A stretch of 63,266 nucleotides of DNA, the filler included, from Octopus bimaculoides (Eukaryota): the NCBI RefSeq assembly GCF_001194135.2. It is 6 parts of 5 records of this genome, joined end to end, with 100 filler letters (N's around TTAATTAATTAA, not from the genome) between each part and the next. Parts side by side here need not be neighbours in the genome. Positions count along the whole stretch, not along the records: positions 35,278 to 49,827 come from NC_068985.1; 5 more parts are not named here. One strand, given 5' to 3'. The notes under the pieces were generated by a model. The model did no database searches and was not told the origin of the DNA. It was given only the letters and a program-made list of their open reading frames with translations. Both the position numbers and the translations under genes were made by a program. Shown here piece by piece: positions 46,675 to 46,895 of this stretch (position 1 is the first letter of the stretch; each line of letters starts with the position of its first letter).

Positions 46675-46895
46675 CTGCTGATAGTTCGTGTGAAAACAGA
46701 AACAGACAAGGTCCTTCTCTCGGTTACGATGATACACACTTAAGTTCAGTCGAGAAAGTTAAACGAAACAGGACGACATTTTCATCCCGACAGTTGCAAG
46801 AACTTGAACGAGCCTTTAGAAAAACGCATTACCCTGATATTTTTATGAGGGAAAGACTGGCCATGAGAATCAAATTACCTGAATCACGGATACAG
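46675..46895 (+). CDS. Internal coding exon of a PRD-class (paired-like) homeobox gene; encodes homeodomain residues 1-46
   Basis: Pyrimidine tract and AG acceptor (ttttgtatctctag, AG at 46673-74); GT donor (cag|gtatgt at 46896). Open frame: [73 protein letters not shown]. The homeodomain starts at 46758. A phase-0 intron after Q46 is the typical PRD-class position; the upstream intron is phase 1. Confidence 0.93.

Follow-up and report, generated by a model that had tools for sequence, protein, structure and literature searches.

The window analysed here is a 63,266-nucleotide stretch of Octopus bimaculoides DNA, of which positions 35278–49827 form a single piece of 14.5 kb. Within this piece, the plus strand carries an exon encoding the first 46 residues of a homeodomain, bounded by splice signals on both sides, with the following features:

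46651–46674, plus strand: 3′ splice region, a pyrimidine-rich tract with the AG acceptor at 46673–46674 (tctctAG)
46675–46895, plus strand: coding exon of 221 nt, consisting of two bases of a split codon and then 73 codons
46677–46757, plus strand: linker of 27 codons upstream of the homeodomain, from translation
46758–46895, plus strand: homeodomain residues 1–46 (N-terminal arm, helix 1, helix 2 and the turn before helix 3)
46896–46901, plus strand: 5′ splice donor GTATGT of the 46/47 intron, read as CAG/GTATGT

By translation, the exon is preceded by a phase-1 intron and exited in phase 0, and its third frame (codons from 46677) is free of stops, with stops present in the other two. About 74% of the 23 bases preceding the AG acceptor are pyrimidines, and the acceptor occupies the same position in a related contig, referred to below as L001 (tttcAG followed by CGGCGGAC), whose donor at the equivalent position reads CAA/GTAAGG. 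The homeodomain part, counted with V as residue 1, stops after Q46, which is the position of the PRD-class 46/47 intron, in phase 0. The Pfam Homeodomain model (PF00046) matches exon residues 29–73 over profile positions 1–45 of 57 with an E-value of 9.6e-14 (51.4 bits), which is far above chance for a 14.5-kb piece and rules out a chance ORF. The best matches among solved structures all belong to the PRD class (Alx4, Pax3, Prrx2, Aristaless and Pax6), and the exon bears PRD-class marks, namely RTTF at positions 5–8, YPD at positions 25–27 and the GT donor directly after Q46. Hence, an earlier note on this DNA, which had described a genuine PRD-class (paired-like) homeobox exon flanked by splice sites and stopping at the PRD-type intron 46/47, is borne out by the AG/GT boundaries, the open frame, the Pfam match and the structure matches. 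The same note had found the exon absent from the ORF track. Indeed, because it has no start codon, it is missed by ORF tracks and remains unannotated, the sole ORF over it being a TTG-started one of 38 aa (46794–46910).

L001, the closest relative that we found, is a contig of a metagenome assembly in ENA (its product is P0001). Its DNA alignment with the window by blastn is limited to 46660–46898, i.e. the exon and a few splice-site bases, at 73% identity, and no further conserved coding blocks were returned by blastn or tblastx between the two, the remaining matches being microsatellite noise. The 46 homeodomain codons (138 nt) differ at 31 nucleotides, of which 7, 0 and 24 fall at the first, second and third codon positions, and M36V is the sole change to the protein. 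This corresponds to a pN of ~0.03 and a pS of ~0.89, at which synonymous sites are saturated and Nei–Gojobori dS is not computable. In the linker, both ends (ADSSCEN and SVEK) are kept and the middle has diverged; differences in the first eight exon codons are mostly at the third position, with ADSSCEN encoded in both. Since 31 nucleotide changes yield a single amino-acid change and the exon alone aligns, it is under strong purifying selection, as a spliced coding exon, and this signature speaks against both a pseudo-exon in decay and a retrocopy. A processed retrocopy is ruled out as well by the frame ending exactly at the 46/47 intron with its GT donor.

The piece does not contain a complete gene. 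Regular-expression searches for WF.NRR and looser motifs in all six frames of 35278–49827 found no helix-3 exon, in agreement with the remark in the earlier note that the exon with residue 50 is missing, and tblastn with 13 full-length family proteins against the same piece matched this exon alone. The eh1 motif in any frame, the C-terminal WTSQQH motif and, in six frames, paired-box hallmark peptides were likewise not found there. Downstream of the exon, 2.9 kb remain to the end of the piece (49827), including a 247-N gap at 48604–48850. Five N gaps break up the 11.4 kb upstream, and the one at 46023–46288 comes within ~390 nt of the exon. Because of these gaps, and because the piece ends so soon, the lack of helix-3 and eh1 exons is not informative. 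L001 has no helix-3 exon in its 1.2 kb downstream and no eh1 motif within 10 kb of the exon. At four orthologous loci (L002, which is from Capitella, L003, L004 and L006), the frame resumes 0.2–3.5 kb downstream with VWFQNRRAKWRKREK after an AG, and an eh1-like exon (KFSISSILDL and variants) lies 0.3–4.2 kb before the homeobox exon, so that these loci have a common layout of eh1 exon, first homeobox exon, 46/47 intron and helix-3 exon.

The surroundings of the exon show several features of their own. The piece 35278–49827 holds 1373 N in six gaps and has a very high density of microsatellites, including (TG)n, (CA)n, (TATG)n, (ACAT)n, (ATGG)n and (AT)n (for example at 39709–39827, 40352–40437, 42222–42366, 43396–43501 and 48310–48464); L001 is similarly microsatellite-rich. 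A 268-nt direct duplicate with 100% identity occupies 42138–42405 and 42753–43020, and its first copy sits between N gaps at 41453–42137 and 42406–42415; it looks like assembly redundancy rather than a biological repeat. At 39838–40090, a 37-nt tandem repeat (6.8 copies, 85% matches) creates a spurious ORF of 106 aa (39859–40179) with no significant Pfam match, and Pfam returned nothing significant for three other ORFs of the piece. L001 also carries, at 2444–3316 on the minus strand and ~7 kb ahead of its homeobox exon, a reverse-transcriptase ORF (weak RVT_1 match) that resembles the remains of a retroelement; nothing in the window aligns to it.

The family to which the exon can be compared most closely was defined as PRD Clade I by Paps et al. 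2015 (PMC5322547), who recovered it in Trochozoa with 67% support and included in it the oyster Cgi_PRD6; the expression of this oyster gene falls after the trochophore stage (PMC5322547). Barton-Owen et al. 2018 (PMC6118893) then revised the clade under the name PRD-I, with members from C. gigas and C. teleta in the tree; in that work, Capca1|30032, formerly ‘Rax?’, is given as PRD-I in supplement file 4 and is still labelled Ct_Rax in the alignment. In the literature on Aprd1/Aprd, this paper (PMC6118893) alone proved relevant. As the reference set for identity, we used 124 sequences of its homeodomain alignment over 46 positions, Mixl1 not being among them. The exon is identical to the Capitella PRD-I (Capca1|30032) at 41 of the 46 positions, to Bf_Aprd1 at 39 and to Cg_PRD6 at 36. 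Among canonical families, Arx comes out best (30–33/46), tied with Otp (31–33/46), followed by Drgx (31/46), Rax (29–30/46), Dmbx (29/46) and Otx (28–29/46). The count of about 28–31 matches to Arx, Rx and Otx in the earlier note thus agrees with the recount, as does its statement that no canonical family fits, given that the best canonical match reaches 33/46; it had overlooked Otp. What does not hold is that the exon is unclassified, since the PRD-I/Aprd1 members match it at 36–41 of 46 positions.

Other comparisons give the same placement. In a word-indexed protein search, 11 proteins with 76–98% identity stood out as a tight group, Otp proteins coming next at ~74%. Each of the 11 extends to ESRIQ, after which its sequence runs on into the intron; one of these matches, CAPTEDRAFT_30032 of Capitella teleta, continues with VWFQNRRAKWRKREK. 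A family HMM built only from the three published members (Capitella PRD-I, Bf_Aprd1 and Cg_PRD6) scored the exon at 115.6 bits, compared with 86.9 for Arx, 83.9 for Otp and 83.1 for Uncx, which leaves a margin of 29 bits over Arx. In a neighbour-joining tree of 139 sequences (Kimura distances, 300 bootstraps), the exon is nested in a PRD-I/Aprd1 clade that comprises the three published members and all newly found relatives, with a bootstrap of 63% over 46 positions and 66% over 60 positions; this support is moderate and similar to the published 67% (Paps et al. 2015, PMC5322547). The homeodomains nearest to the exon in this tree are molluscan (Solemya and Haliotis), and the Otp, Rax, Otx, Dmbx, Alx, Gsc and Hbn clades were recovered at 95–100% with the exon outside them. 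Taken together, we consider it probable, at roughly 85%, that 46675–46895 belongs to a functional PRD Clade I/PRD-I/Aprd1 orthologue as its first homeobox exon. Judged by its sequence, it is an ordinary additional member of a family already described and not a new kind of gene; the suggestion of a novel gene in the earlier note gives way to this grouping inside a named clade, for which the tree support is moderate.

The resemblance to the published members extends to details. The oyster Cgi_PRD6 (CGI_10015407) and the Capitella PRD-I share the 46/47 intron of the exon, and have in common with it the signature of K2, KRNRTTFS(T/S)(R/K)QL(Q/H), (I/V)F, RE(K/R)LA and (I/V)(K/N)LPESRIQ. The exon differs from most PRD-I members, which have K33, in having R33 (RERLA), and its linker (ADSSCEN and onwards) is shared only with L001. 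In Aprd1 of Branchiostoma floridae, belcheri and lanceolatum and in the aprd1-like protein of Saccoglossus, the homeodomain starts with KRNRTTFS and the LPESR(I/V)Q end is present, as in the exon, and the full proteins have an eh1-like motif and Q50, as in mollusc members; these deuterostome sequences differ at positions 33 (E or R), 39 (N or G) and 45 (V), and their homeodomain flanks are not alignable.

Likeness to canonical families is more local. Otp has one 20-residue stretch nearly identical to that of the exon, but differs in QKRHRTRFTPAQLNELE (N-terminal arm and helix 1), LTESRVQ and the KWKKRK after helix 3. Membership in Otp was rejected, as the exon lacks QKRHRTRFTPAQLNELE, has LPESRIQ, is identical at 31–33/46 positions and falls outside an Otp clade with 99% bootstrap. 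With Arx the exon shares ELERAFQKTHYPDVF and presumably Q50, which for the exon is extrapolated from its orthologues; Arx differs in QRRYRTTF (Y4), REELA and LTEARVQ, and has a C-terminal OAR domain. Membership in Arx was likewise rejected, the exon having LPESRIQ and no Y4, an identity of 30–33/46 and an HMM score of 86.9 against 115.6 bits. Neither do Rax, Otx and Dmbx accommodate it, with identities of 28–30/46 and clades of 96–100% bootstrap that exclude it. Otx and Dmbx carry K50, unlike the PRD-I/Aprd1 orthologues that reach residue 50, all of which have Q50.

An alternative explanation is that the exon is a relic, i.e. that the helix-3 and N-terminal exons have been lost and a single exon still looks intact. 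This could account for the absence of a helix-3 or eh1 exon from the piece and would be in keeping with surroundings dense in microsatellites and repeats. However, the reading frame is unbroken and neither splice site is damaged, the comparison with L001 (one amino-acid change versus 31 nucleotide changes) shows conservation that stops at the exon edges, and orthologous introns reach up to 3.5 kb and upstream spacing up to 4.2 kb, set against a gapped piece that ends 2.9 kb downstream. We consider a relic improbable.

It is highly improbable that the exon belongs to a fast-evolving Arx, Otp or Rax orthologue that mimics a separate clade. The oyster possesses Arx, Otp and Rax beside PRD-I, amphioxus has them beside Aprd1, and Capitella has Arx and Otp beside PRD-I (the reference set contains no separate Capitella Rax), while the 29-bit HMM margin over Arx, the position of the exon outside the Otp, Rax, Otx and Alx clades at 95–100% bootstrap, and diagnostic residues that are not shared (Y4 in Arx; QKRHRTRF and KWKKRK in Otp) all speak for a distinct family. 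These points have to be set against the limited phylogenetic signal of a homeodomain alone, the fact that Arx and Otp have the highest canonical identity (33/46), and the naming history, with Capitella 30032 once ‘Rax?’ and the NCBI pipeline applying Rx-, ARX- and Pax-like names. The reading put forward in the earlier note, that of a new, unclassified PRD family specific to spiralians or molluscs, starts from the correct observation that no canonical HomeoDB-type family fits, but it is hardly tenable. Indeed, the clade dates from 2015, with a revision in 2018, and it has deuterostome members in the Branchiostoma Aprd1 and the Saccoglossus aprd1-like proteins; lineage specificity is refuted by this published classification and these deuterostome orthologues. 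The accompanying idea of fast evolution is at odds with an exon that shares 85–89% of its 46 homeodomain residues with the amphioxus and annelid sequences and shows a single amino-acid change, against saturated synonymous sites, relative to L001.

Assignment to PRD-I/Aprd1 places the exon in a family that, on the members recovered here, is neither mollusc- nor spiralian-specific. By HMMER and by names, full-length mollusc members were found in Haliotis (four species), Biomphalaria, Physella, Batillaria, Gigantopelta and Saccostrea, and likewise in Pinctada, Mactra, Mercenaria, Sinanodonta and Solemya (at least two paralogues). Full-length deuterostome members come from Branchiostoma belcheri, Branchiostoma lanceolatum and Saccoglossus kowalevskii (‘Homeobox protein aprd1-like’ in UniRef). 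Every recovered member that reaches helix 3 has Q50 (VWFQNRRAKWRK), and the diagnostic homeodomain residues are K2, S9, R/K11, R21, F29, K/R/E33 and L40-P-E-S-R-(I/V)-Q46. An N-terminal eh1-like motif, (L)KFSISxLLxL, is present in most full-length members, which is an observation made here and not a published criterion, and Pfam on nine full-length members found the Homeodomain only, with no paired domain and no OAR. Public pipelines have given members at least eight different automatic names that mislead (Rx-, ARX-, Pax-6-, Pax-3-, Shox2-, Prrx2- and ISX-like as well as gooseberry), and such inconsistency is a symptom of a family outside the canonical list. The value of the PRD-I/Aprd1 assignment for annotation is that it corrects these names.

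Beyond classification, the distribution of members bears on the age of the family. PRD-I/Aprd1 appears to predate the protostome–deuterostome split, and the idea of a bilaterian origin is already in print. We are evenly divided on the fuller proposition that PRD-I/Aprd1 is a true ancient bilaterian family, lost in vertebrates and ecdysozoans, never functionally studied, and defined by a Q50 paired-like homeodomain, an eh1-like motif and its exon layout. Weighing against it, eh1/octapeptide motifs occur widely in the PRD class. If it is true, the exon adds PRD-I/Aprd1 in a further lineage where automatic annotation misses the family, and the eh1-like motif and exon layout shared by molluscs, Capitella, amphioxus and Saccoglossus would constitute evidence beyond the homeodomain; Barton-Owen et al. 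2018 (PMC6118893) noted that evidence from outside the homeodomain was still needed. In either case, the exon is one more data point for a poorly known family, and the picture of homeobox classes is unchanged by it.

By analogy with better-known relatives, the product is probably a Q50 paired-like transcription factor acting as a Groucho-dependent repressor. Such a paired-like factor would have a homeodomain without a paired domain: the missing next exon is predicted to supply helix 3 with Gln50 (VWFQNRRAKWRKREK), as in every full-length orthologue, and an upstream exon would supply the engrailed-homology-1-like motif LKFSISxLLxL seen in orthologues. Q50 paired-class homeodomains form cooperative dimers on palindromic P3 sites (TAATNNNATTA), and the protein may accordingly be expected to bind a TAAT core, typically as a cooperative dimer on such palindromes. 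Groucho/TLE co-repressors should be recruited through the eh1-like motif, so that repression would be the main activity of the protein.

Several further observations concern the orthologues. In the Capitella locus and three others, the helix-3 exons (L002 11338, L003 13763, L004 10546 and L006 12513) end in a conserved QQWTSQQH(S/N)GL(L/M)V, apparently with an intron next; this motif is absent from the mollusc proteins and from the window. Three bivalve members have a C-terminal motif in common, which reads LPLAVLQSMM in the Mactra (P0187) and Mercenaria (P0194) proteins and PVPLSILQSMT in the Sinanodonta protein (P0195), and no Pfam model matches these stretches. In Gigantopelta aegis, the RefSeq model XP_041366795.1 (P0167) runs from LPESRIQ directly into DISDNEQ, and helix 3 is lacking, probably because its exon was passed over by the pipeline; the family thus appears prone to mis-modelling. 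Finally, a single 143.5-Mb Solemya contig carries at least two near-identical PRD-I paralogues (P0146, P0147 and P0148, the first two being Solemya velum KAL5007102.1 and KAL5007835.1), which suggests lineage-specific duplication.
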